DNA of 63,963 bases, counting the filler, from Octopus bimaculoides (taxonomy: Eukaryota): NCBI RefSeq assembly GCF_001194135.2. It is 5 parts of 4 records of this genome, joined end to end, with 100 filler letters (N's around TTAATTAATTAA, not from the genome) between each part and the next. Parts side by side here need not be neighbours in the genome. Positions count along the whole stretch, not along the records: positions 32,095 to 55,860 come from NC_068986.1; 4 more parts are not named here. One strand, given 5' to 3'. The notes under the pieces were generated by a model, which saw only the letters and a list, made by a program, of their open reading frames with translations, searched no databases and was not told the DNA's origin. Positions 40,055-53,987 of the stretch are shown here, piece after piece. The position numbers were made by a program, and so were the translations under genes. Every line of letters begins with the position of its first letter. The first letter of the stretch is position 1.

Positions 40055-40959
40055 TTAATTATTTCTGCTATTCAGTGTGTATACAGTCTGTCTTGCCGTT
40101 ATGGGCTTCCTAAAACATGTTTTCTTAAACGTTGTGCGAAATGCTCTGCTTGTGATCATATAACAAATAAAGTTGAAACAGTGGTTAATCTGCGACAACA
40201 TATTCAACATAAGATAGTTTTTGAAATTAACTTCAAATTCTATCTGTGTCAGTACAAAAGTAAATATTGATATAGGAAAGGTTGTTAGCAAAAACAAAAC
40301 ATCCATGGAAATTACCACATAAATATTGGTCCGACTCCGCTGTGAGTTGCGTTTTGTCTGTTGTCCGAGGTTCGGTCTTTGGAGTAGCTTATAGATTAAG
40401 GCAACAGAACTGGTGATTTAAATCACCGCTGGGACAAACGAATAAATGGCAAGTGATATGTTCCATTTATGCTTCAACAATTTTCTCAATATTGTATCTA
40501 AAGTATATATTATAGAAACACAAATAAGAAGAACGAACATAACGCCGTATGGTTTGTAAGCATTAGACAAATTTAGCCGGGAAAACGGTTTGAAAACTGC
40601 TAACAAACGCTCGAGTGATACAACTACCAATAACCATGAAGAAAAAGTGATTAATAACAAAGTAATTCCCCTGGAAACTGGATCGTGAAATAACATTTTA
40701 ACACAGTCTGCATTTTAAAAAATAAAAGTATAATATATATATATTTATTGGAAAGAAGAAATACTATACCCAAGTCTACAAAACCTAAAGTCACGACGTA
40801 TGGGGCAATTTTAGACTGACGCATTTCTTTCCTGCAAAATATTACAATCCCTGTTAAATTACAGAAACTTCCACATACTATTAACGTCATGCAAACATAC
40901 CGTATAGTAAGAATTGCAGTTAAGTTCGTATGATTCCTTATGACGGTACTGTTTAGCAT
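40055..40959 (-). pseudogene. Class A orphan GPCR pseudogene (copy A)
   Basis: Three ORF pieces assemble into a full paralogue of 48456-49388 (GSFCN, LGFVD, VSLERLLA, YKPY, YSFVP, FLLTTFP, NHCFNFICY). Lesions: frameshift in an (AT)n run near 40735, a TAA at 40714-40716 in the restored frame, and a TAA after PAVI (40418-40420). Confidence 0.9.
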
Positions 40960-42244
40960 CGTCTCAACTTAGACGTATGTCTTAAGCAGCAATAATTACT
41001 GTAGACTATAAAGTTGAATAAAATACTTAATCTCTATCTCTGTATATATATATATATATAAATATGAAGAAAATTAATTTTCGGGTTTCTGTTACAATAT
41101 TTTTTTATTTCATGTGTTAAATAGACTTGGCTTCGAGTTCTATGGTTGCCATTAACACTGAATACGATTTGTATGTTGAATATGCTATTCCAACTTAGTT
41201 TCATGCAATTATTTACGGTATATGTAACCGATATTCATTTCATACTTTGTGCTCACAGTAATTTAGAAATGATAACCCGTTTGTAGTTTGCAACCAAGCA
41301 AGCAGTTTAGGAAACATAAATAATTGTAAGTTTGAGGTGTATCTTATTTAAGGCGAACTGCTATTGAAATAAACAATATGAGACAGTATTATATTAATGA
41401 AACAAGCAAGTATCACAGTAAAGAGATATTTAAAAAGACGATACATCTCCGTATGATATTAACATATTAAATATAAAATATCTAATAAAAATATAATCTA
41501 ATGTTTTTTTTATACTTCCCGAAAATGAGAGGATTAAATGCACTTAACTCACATGAAATAATTCCATTCGAATACTATGCAACTGAATTACGTATGTTAC
41601 TGTCAGATTCTAGTCATCAATTTTATATTCACTGCTACAATCTCGAATCTGAAACAAACTGTTAGTCCCTTTGATTTACACACACATACACACACACACA
41701 CACACACACACACACACACACACACACACACACACACACACACGTATATATATATATATATATATATGTGTGTGTATATATGTATATCTATATGTATATA
41801 TATATGTTTGTATATATATATATATATATATATATATATGTGTGTGTGTGTGTGTGTGTGTGTGTGTGTGTGTGTGTGTGTGTGTGTGTGTAGGTTGTGA
41901 GCATAATAAACATAAATCCGGTTTATCCTTGCCTCCGTTTAATATAATAATTTTATACATAAAGTGATAATAGTGAGTCTTTCATTACTGTTAATATAAT
42001 TTCCTCTTTAAAATAACATAAAATATGACACGAATATTAACTTATTGAACAGGAGCACGGTTTTACTAATATATCATAATGATCATAATATTAATCATGA
42101 TCCCTGTCATCATCATCATCGTCGTCGTCACCACAATGGTCATCAGCATCGTTATCATGATCTCCTTCATTATCATTGTCACCTTTATAAAAAAAAAATT
42201 AAATAAATAATAATTACCGTCACCGTTATTAACCTCGTCAATGT

Positions 42245-42540
42245 TGAGCTGGCAGTCTAGTTAGCAGGCTGGGCAAAATGCTTAGCGGCATTTCGTTCGA
42301 CCTTATGTTCCGAGTTCAAATTGTACCGCGGTCGACTTTGCCATTTATACTTTCCAGGTCGATGAAAGAAAGCTGTGGATTTATCCCCCTCCCGCAACAT
42401 CGCTGGCCTTGCGCCAAAAATTGAAATCAATATTATTATGAAGAAGCTAGCTTCCGAACCACATGGTTCCCGGTTCAGTCCCAGTGCTTAGCCGAACAAA
42501 GCCCTGCGGTAGACGGACATTTAAAGAAGCCTATCGTAAA
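42245..42540 (+). mobile_element. SINE family 1 followed by SINE family 2 fragment
   Basis: GAGCTGGCAG...GAGTTCAAATT...GGTCGACTTTGCC; then GAACCACATGGTTCCCGGTTCAGTCCCAGTGC...AAAGAAGCC. Confidence 0.7.
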
Positions 42541-42923
42541 TATATATATANNNNNNNNNNNNNNNNNNNNNNNNNNNNNNNNNNNNNNNNNNNNNNNNNN
42601 NNNNNNNNNNNNNNNNNNNNNNNNNNNNNNNNNNNNNNNNNNNNNNNNNNNNNNNNNNNNNNNNNNNNNNNNNNNNNNNNNNNNNNNNNNNNNNNNNNNN
42701 NNNNNNNNNNNNNNNNNNNNNNNNNNNNNNNNNNNNNNNNNNNNNNNNNNNNNNNNNNNNNNNNNNNNNNNNNNNNNNNNNNNNNNNNNNNNNNNNNNNN
42801 NNNNNNNNNNNNNNNTATAGATTTAATCAACAGATTCAATGTGGTACTTAAAATGTTTGAGGCACCAGAATTTGGTAGAGTAAAGCCAAAAACAAAATCA
42901 AGAGATTTGGTGAATAAAATTTG

Positions 42924-51559: not shown

Positions 51560-51760
51560 CATGTTACAGTCATTTCACTGATGCCATGCTGAACCACCGC
51601 TTTTAGTCGGGCAAATCGACCCCATGCCTTGTTCTTTGTAGGCCTAGTATTTATTCTATCGGTCTCTTTTTGACGGACCGCTAGTATACAGGGACGTAAA
51701 CACACCATAAATTTAGACGTAGCCGGAACAAATCTTTGGTCGAAACATACACACACACAC
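51560..51760 (-). mobile_element. SINE-associated family 3 copy
   Basis: Reverse complement of the family 3 segment (GTTACAGTCATTTCACTGATGCCATGCTGAACCACCGC...GACGTAAACACACCA). Confidence 0.6.
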
Positions 51761-53056
51761 ACACATAATACGTATATACATACATAAATATTCATATATA
51801 TATATATATATGNNNNNNNNNNNNNNNNNNNNNNNNNNNNNNNNNNNNNNNNNNNNNNNNNNNNNNNNNNNNNNNNNNNNNNNNNNNNNNNNNNNNNNNN
51901 NNNNNNNNNNNNNNNNNNNNNNNNNNNNNNNNNNNNNNNNNNNNNNNNNNNNNNNNNNNNNNNNNNNNNNNNNNNNNNNNNNNNNNNNNNNNNNNNNNNN
52001 NNNNNNNNNNNNNNNNNNNNNNNNNNNNNNNNNNNNNNNNNNNNNNNNNATATATATATATACATATATATATATATACATACATACATTTATGTACATA
52101 GATACATATATGCGTGTCTACAGATTTTTTTTGACGTTTGACAGTAGTTCTTTTGAAGTGTTGTACTGAGAATAATTTCGTTGTTACCAACACTCTGTTT
52201 AAGCTAAAAAAATACATATAAAACCCCCTGGATGTACCCACGATCTAAGCAATGGCATCTCATACGTTATATTTTGATCAGAAAACGTGATATGAAAGTC
52301 ATTGCTAGCGTTCGGGCCACGTCTAGTGCATGGAGAAATAGATTTTTCGATAATGTGTAAAATTCGATAGTCTGGTCCCCGAAAGTTAAATGTTGCAAAC
52401 TTTAAATTATCGAGCAACTTGCAAAGATTTCACAATGCTATAGAAAGTATCCATCTTGACACAGACTATCTATGGGAAGATTTCAAAACAAAATAGATTC
52501 GTCAGTGGGATTCAAATTACGTCAGTGCAGTGAATGGTTCTCAGAACGATCAAGAGAAATTCATGGATCCACTGTTAGAAAATCAAATCTTAGTCAACAC
52601 ACTTGTTTCTTAGTTCTTGAACCCCAACTCAAACGAAGCTTACAGATATCTGAAAGGGAAAGTGCAGACTGCTCTAAGGAAAATCAGACCCATGGCATCA
52701 TTTCTCTCAGATGCTTCTTGTGCCACTTTTGCCCTATCATTCTGTCATTCCTGTCTGATTTTCCTTAGTGCAGTCTCTATGTACATATATATCTATATCT
52801 ATATATATATATATATAGGGAGTTATCCCTCTCACCATATATATATATATATATATATATGTGTGTGTGTGTGTGTGTGTGTGTGTGTGTGTGTGTGTGT
52901 GTGTGTATTTACACATATACACATACATACATTCATACATTGATGGTTAGCATACTGGGTTTTGCAAGCAATTGCACACTTACATGTAGAAAAATCTTTA
53001 TCTGTAGATGCAAATATCGTGTAAGTAATTACTGACCTTTTATAATGAAGTATATA

Positions 53057-53987
53057 TTAATTACTTCTTTCATTCATGTATAGAGCGTCTGTCTCATCAC
53101 TGGAGGTCCTCGAAGGCATGCTTTATAGGATTTTTCTCTAAACGCTCTGCTTGTAATCATATAATAAATAAAATTGAAGAAGTTGTTTATGAGGGCCAAA
53201 GCTCTCAACAGAATAAAGGTGTCCAAAATTTGTGAAATTCTCTTTTTCTGTTCGATAATACAAAGAAATAAATTGATAAAGGGAATGTTGTGAGAAGAAA
53301 TAAGATATTGACAGCAATTACAACGCTAATTGTGGTCATCCTTCGTTCTGAGACATTGCTTTGAGAGTGTTGGCCAGATTTTTATTGTTGGAGTAACTTA
53401 CGAATCAATTCGAAAGATCTGGCGATTAAAATCCATGCTGGTAAGAATGAATACATTATCAATTCAGAGCGAAAATTATACTCTGCTTTTTTTTTACAGT
53501 AGTGCAATTAATATCTTCGTTATAGAAATAGAAATCAGAAGAACAAACATAACTGTGAATAGTTTTTAAAGTTTTAGTGAAATGCGGTTGCGAAAACGAA
53601 GCATAAATTGCTATCAAACGTTCAAGCGATATAACTGCCATTAACCGCGAGGAATACATGTCAAGAGAGAAAGCCATTCTGTCAAAAATAAATTCAGCCA
53701 TCGCTGTGACTGAGTTCACGTTTTGATAAATAAGCGTTTAATATACATATCTTGGGGAAACCTACTCAGATTATGCACAATCCTACGGAGCCTAAATAAA
53801 TCAGATATGGCGGAACTTTAGACAGACACATTTATCTCCTGCAAAATATTGCAATAACGGCTAAATTACCGAATGTTCCAAATATCAACAACGTTATGGA
53901 AACATATCGTGTTGTAAAAATTGTAGAAATATTCGTGTGATTGGTTATCAGGAAACTGTTCTTTATCGGGGAATTGTGAATATCTAT
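53057..53987 (-). pseudogene. Class A orphan GPCR pseudogene (copy C)
   Basis: Colinear with copy B over about 930 nt (NHTNISTIFTTRYVSITLLIFGTFGNLAVIAIFCRR*, SLDMYSSRLMAVISLERLIAIY, FNFIYYMITSRAF). It has several stops and frameshifts, and both ATG-equivalent positions read ATA. Confidence 0.9.

Follow-up and report, generated by a model that had tools for sequence, protein, structure and literature searches.

A probable birth-and-death cluster of FMRFamide-receptor-like orphan receptor genes in Octopus bimaculoides

The stretch of DNA analysed here (63,963 nucleotides, filler included, from the genome of Octopus bimaculoides; 'the window') carries, between positions 40055 and 53987, three related copies of a gene for a G protein-coupled receptor (GPCR), which we call A, B and C. 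All lie within the piece derived from NC_068986.1 (positions 32095–55860 of the stretch, 23.8 kb), and together they raise the question of what kind of gene cluster this is: a fragment of a lineage-specific expansion of intronless receptors, possibly chemosensory, as a first-pass annotation of the DNA proposed, or a smaller and more local affair. The reading that we favour, and that we hold to be probable if well short of certain, is a scaffold-level birth-and-death cluster belonging to a cephalopod-only family of orphan receptors of GPR139/FMRFamide-receptor (FMRFaR) type, with a single coding exon and one surviving gene. This retains the core of the earlier proposal, a birth-and-death cluster of FMRFamide-receptor-like orphans, in that the copies are same-strand, single-coding-exon class A paralogues that were pseudogenised independently.

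Three receptor copies on one strand

A tblastn search of the piece with the intact open reading frame (ORF) of copy B returns three loci and no others, each of them on the minus strand: B itself (48459–49388, 100%), A (40058–40965, as two high-scoring segment pairs (HSPs) in different frames, E 1e-79) and C (53080–53978, as several HSPs spread over three frames, E 1e-52). A six-frame scan with a hidden Markov model (HMM) of the family profile found no fourth copy in the readable sequence of the piece. B, the sole long clean ORF in the ORF listing, occupies 48456–49388 (−; stop codon 48456–48458) and encodes a divergent class A GPCR in an intact single exon of 310 codons. Projecting these codons onto the alignment of the copies, we see that A (40055–40965, −) is an unprocessed pseudogene, disabled by a frameshift of +2 nt within a run of TA (40743–40744) and by two nonsense codons, both TAA, at the positions of B codons 88 (CAA>TAA, 40715–40717) and 187 (TTA>TAA, 40418–40420); its start codon, its stop codon and nearly all of the family motifs are still there. 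C (53057–53987, −) is a heavily decayed pseudogene: the start is lost (ATG>ATA, 53987–53985), five frameshifting indels fall at 53751, 53570, 53496, 53231 and 53077, five in-frame stops stand at B codons 52, 74, 83, 141 and 202, and conserved residues have gone (D2.50>G, W>R in the SSW motif, and P>S in intracellular loop 2, ICL2). No lesion is common to A and C, which indicates that the two were inactivated independently. A (GATA)n microsatellite at 53981–54071 abuts the lost start of C and occupies the place of the conserved 5′ flank that A and B share.

The conceptual products are 52.5% (A–B), 55.6% (B–C) and 46% (A–C) identical at the amino-acid level, with corresponding nucleotide identities of 69%, 73% and 65%, and all three copies have S-L-E-R in the third transmembrane helix (TM3). 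In a DNA self-comparison the repeated unit comprises the coding sequence (CDS) plus ~50 bp on each side; self-BLAST found no duplication beyond these flanks, so that the size of the original duplication unit is not recoverable. What the first-pass annotation reported at this level is borne out—three same-orientation paralogues, one of them open and two independently pseudogenised, substantial divergence between A and B, and an S-x-ER motif in TM3.

Its description of the copies as a tandem array in one orientation within 14 kb holds on the scaffold, but each copy lies on a contig of its own (A on 34621–42550, B on 47063–50023 and C on 52050–54275); it is thus the scaffold, rather than continuous sequence, that gives their order, orientation and 14-kb span, and the spacing of the copies includes 1766 N, a length that is estimated. 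The four assembly gaps between the copies (42551–42815, 46363–47062, 50024–50587 and 51813–52049) are all intergenic, and hence no reading-frame call depends on them. Most are flanked by (TA)n or (TAA)n microsatellites, as would be expected of assembly breaks at simple repeats, and gaps of an estimated 237–700 nt, if those estimates are right, are too short to conceal a 930-bp copy.

The coding region is a single exon in every genomic copy examined, and the ORF is uninterrupted in all of the genomic contigs examined for this structure. The flanks carry further features. Thirteen nucleotides after the stop codon of B lies a consensus 5′ splice-site motif, AGGTAAGTAG (48433–48442, −), which occurs once in the 23.8-kb piece, falls within a 3′ flank conserved among the paralogues, is found again ~13 nt after the stop codon of B's closest relative (genomic contig L003, from another cephalopod), and is degraded in pseudogenes A and C. 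Some 55 nt of this flank are conserved to the same degree as the CDS; no AATAAA was found within ~650 nt downstream of B, and no poly(A) tract or A-run in the 3′ flanks. Together, AGGTAAGTAG and the conservation around it suggest a putative intron in the 3′ untranslated region (UTR). On the upstream side, a 3′ splice-acceptor-like motif, TTACACAG (49427–49434, −), stands 38 nt before the ATG of B, with CTACAG (41004–40999, −) 39 nt before that of A and the TTACACAG octamer again ~75 nt before the ORF of family member P0001 in contig L001. TTACACAG occurs three times in the piece, and the hint that these motifs give of a putative 5′-UTR intron is a weak one. The genes were earlier called intronless; this is correct for the coding region, but with splice-site-like motifs conserved in the flanks the word is probably too strong. 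Strictly intronless they probably are not, and 'single coding exon' is the safer description.

The open copy and its family

By its fold, its match to Pfam 7tm_1 and its micro-switches, B is a class A (rhodopsin-type) GPCR. It scores 31.2 bits against the 7tm_1 cut-off of 30.5, and an AlphaFold2 model made with a 29-sequence family alignment as input has seven TM helices plus helix 8, with a predicted local distance difference test score (pLDDT) of 81 and a predicted template-modelling score (pTM) of 0.80. Foldseek matches this model to many class A structures with a probability of 1.0 and template-modelling scores (TM-scores) of 0.6–0.7; the matches in the PDB are generic to class A, and give no subfamily signal. 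Working along the chain, we find GTFNN in TM1, LGFVDL in TM2, SSWLVVVISLERL in TM3, YSFMPA in TM5, FLLTTFP in TM6, NNCFNFVCN in TM7 and NRAFRENFK in helix 8; the class A micro-switches N1.50, D2.50, (E/D)R3.50, P5.50 and P6.50 are all present (in GTFNN, LGFVDL, SLERL, SFMPA and TTFP, respectively). N-glycosylation sequons are located at N16, N19 and N89, two of them in the short N-terminus.

The NPxxY motif of TM7 is not found in B, which reads NFVCN. Phenylalanine in place of the proline is a family trait, seen in 27 of the 29 aligned family sequences (one of the remaining two has Cys, the other Ile); the change of the activation switch Tyr7.53 to Asn, at B codon 276 (48561–48563, −), belongs to B alone among the 29, and the tyrosine is still encoded by both pseudogene neighbours, A and C. 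B also lacks, in the upper end of TM3 and in extracellular loop 2 (ECL2) alike, any cysteine from which the Cys3.25–ECL2 disulfide could be made—the cysteines of B are at positions 49, 64, 153, 240, 270 and 275 only—and in the AlphaFold2 model ECL2 consists of just three residues (165–167). Across the core subfamily, positional entropy is higher in the extracellular halves of the helices than in the intracellular halves (2.01 versus 1.24 bits, p=1e-10), a pattern suggesting that the pocket diversifies while the transducer-coupling face stays conserved.

B itself is absent from the protein collection searched. A word-indexed search with it finds one relative only, and the family comes into view only with exhaustive HMMER, which, across 1.84 billion cluster representatives (clusters at 50% identity), returns 10 at E<1e-30, a number that rises to 26 at E<1e-10 and to 263 at E<1e-3. 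From this search, the best relative is only 54% identical to B, the best annotated O. bimaculoides protein 56%, and ~8 fragments of the family are annotated in that species. Close relatives (E<1e-30) that carry a source name are cephalopod without exception (O. bimaculoides A0A0L8II40, A0A0L8GGA3 and others, along with one protein of Acanthosepion pharaonis); the others derive from Logan or European Nucleotide Archive (ENA) contigs, and the Logan contigs with relatives end in microsatellites, which marks them as genomic DNA rather than transcripts. A0A0L8II40 and A0A0L8GGA3 were not found in the supplements of Ritschard et al., and the relatives are not assignable to the published groups or expression profiles.

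Outside the family, the named matches are lophotrochozoan orphans only 23–25% identical to B, such as a hypothetical protein of Paralvinella and a 'cysteinyl leukotriene receptor 1-like' protein of Babylonia, from which it follows that there is no 1:1 relation to a conserved neuropeptide receptor. In this respect the locus behaves as the first-pass annotation anticipated. The lineage-specific expansion that it also envisaged is a different matter: with 10 clusters at the stricter threshold and 26 at the next, the family looks small, and a small family was what that annotation itself had named as speaking against its proposal. What emerges looks to be a small orphan family that evolves fast and has so far turned up in cephalopods alone.

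In a neighbour-joining bootstrap tree, B and C pair with each other (84%) and are joined successively by P0005/P0002 (69%), by A (77%), and then by P0001 and P0003. A sister subfamily (P0015, P0017, P0019, P0020 and others) has a longer ECL2, that of the core being shorter by ~7 residues, and the disulfide cysteines absent from the core are kept in it (P0015, P0017, P0020). To this sister subfamily belongs a tandem, same-strand pair, 62% identical and 9.3 kb apart (695–1594 and 10001–10951 of contig L002, ENA ERZ21867824 ctg117151l), an independent case which suggests that tandem duplication is the usual mode of family growth; the upstream copy of the pair forms part of a gene call of 504 aa that probably extends too far. 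The cuttlefish Acanthosepion pharaonis provides a single-exon orthologue of the same subfamily (contig L009, CAHIKZ030002957.1, 9953–10780), matching P0015 continuously at 61% identity over 276 aa, at the first exon of the deposited model; the broader family thus predates the octopod–decapod split. The deposited model itself (P0183, 236 aa, spanning 12 kb) looks mis-spliced, its C-terminal part being of low complexity. In L003, the gene of B's closest relative (~487–1419) has a 1-nt frameshift near codon 15; the protein called from it begins at Met53 and would lose TM1, and the relative was seen in five independent run assemblies (L003–L007; Logan SRR11869384/85/90/91/94). It, too, has probably been pseudogenised, a fate that seems frequent in the family.

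Where, then, does the family sit among class A receptors? Pfam 7tm_1 matches all 17 of the family sequences scanned (best E 8e-16) and the nematode Srw model 12 of them (best E 3.8e-15), B matching 7tm_1 only. Searched against the PDB by itself with phmmer, B gives marginal matches only (E>0.05), and family profiles were needed: two of these both place human GPR139 first among solved structures (80.4 bits against 73.8 for the next match, and 87 against 81.7), with GPR35 and rhodopsin as runners-up, 5–7 bits lower. Common to the family and GPR139 are S-W-I-T-V...(E/D)R in TM3, NxxxNFxLY in TM7 and SKxFR in helix 8; since GPR139 itself reads NFxLY in TM7, the NFxxY variant is one that occurs in a known receptor. 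According to Thiel et al. 2021, the FMRFamide type-1, myosuppressin, MIP, proctolin, RGWamide and NPY-4 receptors of protostomes are sister to deuterostome GPR139/142, and most members of this supergroup are activated either by aromatic amino acids or by peptides whose C-terminus is aromatic and amidated (PMC8557429). With a small margin, and at the level of the supergroup, it appears reasonable to place the family among these GPR139/FMRFaR-type (Srw-like) receptors; the label 'FMRFamide-receptor-like orphan' used in the first-pass annotation can be kept at that same level.

Survival of copy B and the readings of the cluster

The differences between B and C were polarised with L003 and A as outgroups, and the ratio of non-synonymous to synonymous change (pN/pS) was compared with 1 by Fisher's test: it is 0.55 on branch B (p = 0.027), 0.71 on branch C (p = 0.10, not different from 1), 0.43 on branch A (p = 5.6e-05) and 0.32 on branch L003 (p = 1.4e-10). 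When the 75–100 substitutions of the B branch were simulated on the reconstructed ancestor, with the mutation spectrum of C, 3.5–7% of replicates remained stop-free under neutrality; scaling the frameshift count of C gives a 3–4% chance of zero frameshifts on the same branch. The pN/pS ratio and this improbable survival without stops or frameshifts indicate that B was kept open by selection for most of its history, and B is probably retained by selection, but weakly. The five stops of C match the 3.8–4.4 expected under full neutrality, which argues for an early death, while the few lesions of A on a long branch, with nearly all motifs kept, point to a fairly recent inactivation.

Put together, the favoured reading would run as follows. 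The locus would comprise three old, DNA-level duplicates of one rhodopsin-class GPCR gene, from a family that would branch within the GPR139/GPR142 – FMRFamide-type-1/myosuppressin/MIP receptor supergroup and be recognised in Pfam by way of the nematode 'Srw' model. B and C would be sister copies, A having separated before B/C parted from the O. bimaculoides P0005 lineage; C would have died soon after duplication and A fairly recently, leaving B still open. The product of B would be a seven-TM receptor of the plasma membrane whose N-terminus is short and glycosylated. The outer, hypervariable half of each helix would line the ligand pocket, which is presumably uncapped, given an ECL2 of ~3 residues in the model and no TM3–ECL2 disulfide. 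The conserved inner half (SSWxxVxISxER, the PF of ICL2, IYKLLxRPxLGQ, FLLTTFP, NNxxNFxxY and helix 8) would couple to the G protein. By homology, the likeliest class of ligand would be a peptide with an aromatic or amidated C-terminus (RFamide/Wamide type), or else an aromatic amino acid, and an endogenous ligand seems more likely than an environmental one.

Copies that sit on separate contigs joined through N gaps, and that have no introns in their coding region, might be products of a scaffolding error, collapsed alleles, or processed retrogenes inserted independently of one another. We regard this as very improbable. The copies differ at 27–35% of nucleotides and are therefore not alleles or assembly duplicates, an explanation that we rejected on this ground; all three lie on the same strand with ~50 bp of flank conserved on both sides, the gap flanks are microsatellites, and the tandem same-strand pair of the sister subfamily comes from an independent assembly. 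Processed retrogenes were likewise rejected, on the strength of a 3′ end without any poly(A) tract or A-run, the ~55 nt of conserved flank, the clustering on one strand and the splice-site-like motifs in the flanks. Alternatively, the whole cluster may be decaying, with B an open-frame relic whose function was lost too recently for a disabling mutation to have appeared. This would account for B being the only one of the 29 aligned sequences without Tyr7.53, for a pN/pS near that of C, for the death of both neighbours and for a Pfam score barely over threshold; we nevertheless think it quite unlikely. Under neutrality the probabilities of B remaining stop-free (0.035–0.07) and frameshift-free (0.03–0.04) combine to ~0.001–0.003, 17 of 18 invariant or nearly invariant family positions are kept in B (the exception being Tyr276, that is Tyr7.53), and the splice-donor-like motif after its stop codon is intact, unlike those of A and C, which have decayed. 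A loss of function in B that fits these observations could only be a recent one.

Doubtful, if deserving of a fuller hearing, is the suggestion that the copies belong to a clade of chemoreceptors for external waterborne or contact cues, deployed in the olfactory organ, suckers, lips or skin, with a turnover that tracks ecological change. The tandem layout, the single coding exon, the two dead copies out of three, the frameshifted relative in another species (L003), the lineage restriction of the family, the divergence concentrated in the pocket-forming outer helix halves and the relaxed pN/pS are all in its favour. So is the fact that the closest specific Pfam model, Srw, is that of a nematode chemoreceptor family; moreover, relatives of GPR139 answer to aromatic amino acids (PMC8557429), plausible cues in water, and Nath et al. 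2025 read the lineage-specific class A expansions of Lophotrochozoa as chemosensory (PMC11886862). The family, however, looks small at either of the two stricter thresholds (10 clusters at E<1e-30, 26 at E<1e-10); lineage-specific class A expansions are reported to be markedly reduced in cephalopods, with a mean of 29, and receptors resembling nicotinic acetylcholine receptors are named as the chemotactile alternative (PMC11886862); for the cephalopod-specific expansions, expression is reported to be mainly non-brain, with testes, gills and mixed tissues rather than specifically sensory ones as its sites (PMC6408891); and the same genomic signatures accompany expansions of peptide receptors, for example the FMRFamide_R-like genes of gastropods (PMC11589774). 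A sharper form of the idea, in which the branch with the uncapped pocket would constitute a GPCR chemosensory system of coleoids (in the olfactory organ or lips, say), working alongside the nicotinic-receptor-like chemotactile receptors of the suckers and detecting waterborne aromatic amino acids or amidated peptides, strikes us as distinctly unlikely.

Several points also weigh against the favoured reading of a birth-and-death cluster with one surviving GPR139/FMRFaR-type gene. It is only by scaffolding through four gaps that A, B and C become neighbours. B clears the 7tm_1 cut-off by only 0.7 bits and has no match to Srw, and with Tyr7.53 lost and constraint weak it may signal poorly or not at all. 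The size of the family is estimated from databases of proteins, in which pseudogenes and unannotated single-exon genes go unseen (as B does). Its placement in the supergroup is drawn from profile matches and motifs, and the lead of GPR139 over rhodopsin and galanin receptors is small, at only ~5 bits; the proposed class of ligand is a matter of homology purely.

Surrounding sequence, and comparison with known systems

The remainder of the piece (G+C 34%, microsatellite-rich) contains no tRNA or Rfam family that we could find, nor any Pfam domain in its intergenic ORFs. A long imperfect palindrome of ~290 bp at 42924–43215, 76% identical to its own reverse complement, is possibly an element resembling a miniature inverted-repeat transposable element (MITE). 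At 35767–35931 two copies of an 83-bp unit stand in tandem (89% matches), and two intergenic contigs have in common a dispersed repeat of ~100 bp (42260–42366 and 45604–45701, 71% identity). A short open frame on the plus strand (46173–46361; …KAIKQMKSKLKLEQQRTMIKRWQEKLLHGKYWAKLNAKEIDREKSQQWLR) runs into the gap at 46363 without a Pfam match, and presumably resembles sequence that follows the reverse-transcriptase domain in retrotransposons lacking long terminal repeats (non-LTR). Some 600 bp downstream of pseudogene A, adjoining perfect trinucleotide arrays at 39161–39430, (TCT)30, (TAA)23 and (TCA)n, yield long, spurious ORFs for homopolymeric peptides.

Earlier catalogues of Lophotrochozoa, cephalopods among them, already list tandem class A expansions that include pseudogenes and lack the TM3–ECL2 disulfide (PMC11886862, PMC6408891), and the present locus is apparently a new, unannotated member of a cephalopod orphan family. 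If our reading is right, it adds three unannotated members, one gene and two pseudogenes, to a cephalopod-specific family of orphan receptors, and sharpens the description of that family to one of GPR139/FMRFaR-type ancestry with NFxxY in TM7, a lost disulfide, a minimal ECL2, and a single coding exon with probable UTR introns; a modest addition. Its use would lie in choosing candidates for deorphanisation and in annotating the genomes of cephalopods, in which genes of this kind are overlooked or mis-spliced. By itself, the cluster leaves knowledge of cephalopod chemosensation and peptide signalling unchanged.

The closest parallel is with the lophotrochozoan class A expansions (PMC11886862), including the cephalopod 'group 1/2' of Ritschard et al. 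2019 (PMC6408891). These too are lineage-restricted orphans in tandem clusters on scaffolds, with full-length, truncated and pseudogene members, no TM3–ECL2 disulfide, variation that is highest in the extracellular halves, and neighbours among molluscan peptide-receptor-like sequences; the present subfamily differs in looking small and in having an extremely short ECL2, and neither its three copies nor their O. bimaculoides relatives could be matched to the published gene lists. With the GPR139/GPR142 – FMRFamide type-1/myosuppressin/MIP/proctolin/RGWamide supergroup it has in common the TM3, TM7 and helix 8 motifs, and GPR139 as its best match among solved structures, but it aligns very divergently with human GPR139 and has no 1:1 orthologue among the deorphanised members; the canonical disulfide cysteines have been lost and ECL2 is shortened.

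The gastropod FMRFamide_R-like expansions (Koene et al. 2024, PMC11589774) likewise represent a clustered, lineage-specific proliferation of FMRFamide-receptor-like class A genes in molluscs, but there the copies number in the hundreds (~450 in Lymnaea), against ~10–26 clusters at 50% identity for the present family in all cephalopod data. The Srw chemoreceptors of nematodes (Pfam PF10324), whose model matches 12 of our 17 sequences, are also rapidly evolving class A receptors derived from peptide receptors; B, however, falls below the Srw model, and the Pfam match would reflect common FMRFaR-like descent and not membership of the nematode family. Finally, the birth-and-death clusters of vertebrate odorant receptors resemble the present one in their tandem arrangement, in their many pseudogenes and in a single coding exon with UTR introns probably on either side, but are related to it in sequence only at the level of class A, the present family being apparently smaller by one to two orders of magnitude.

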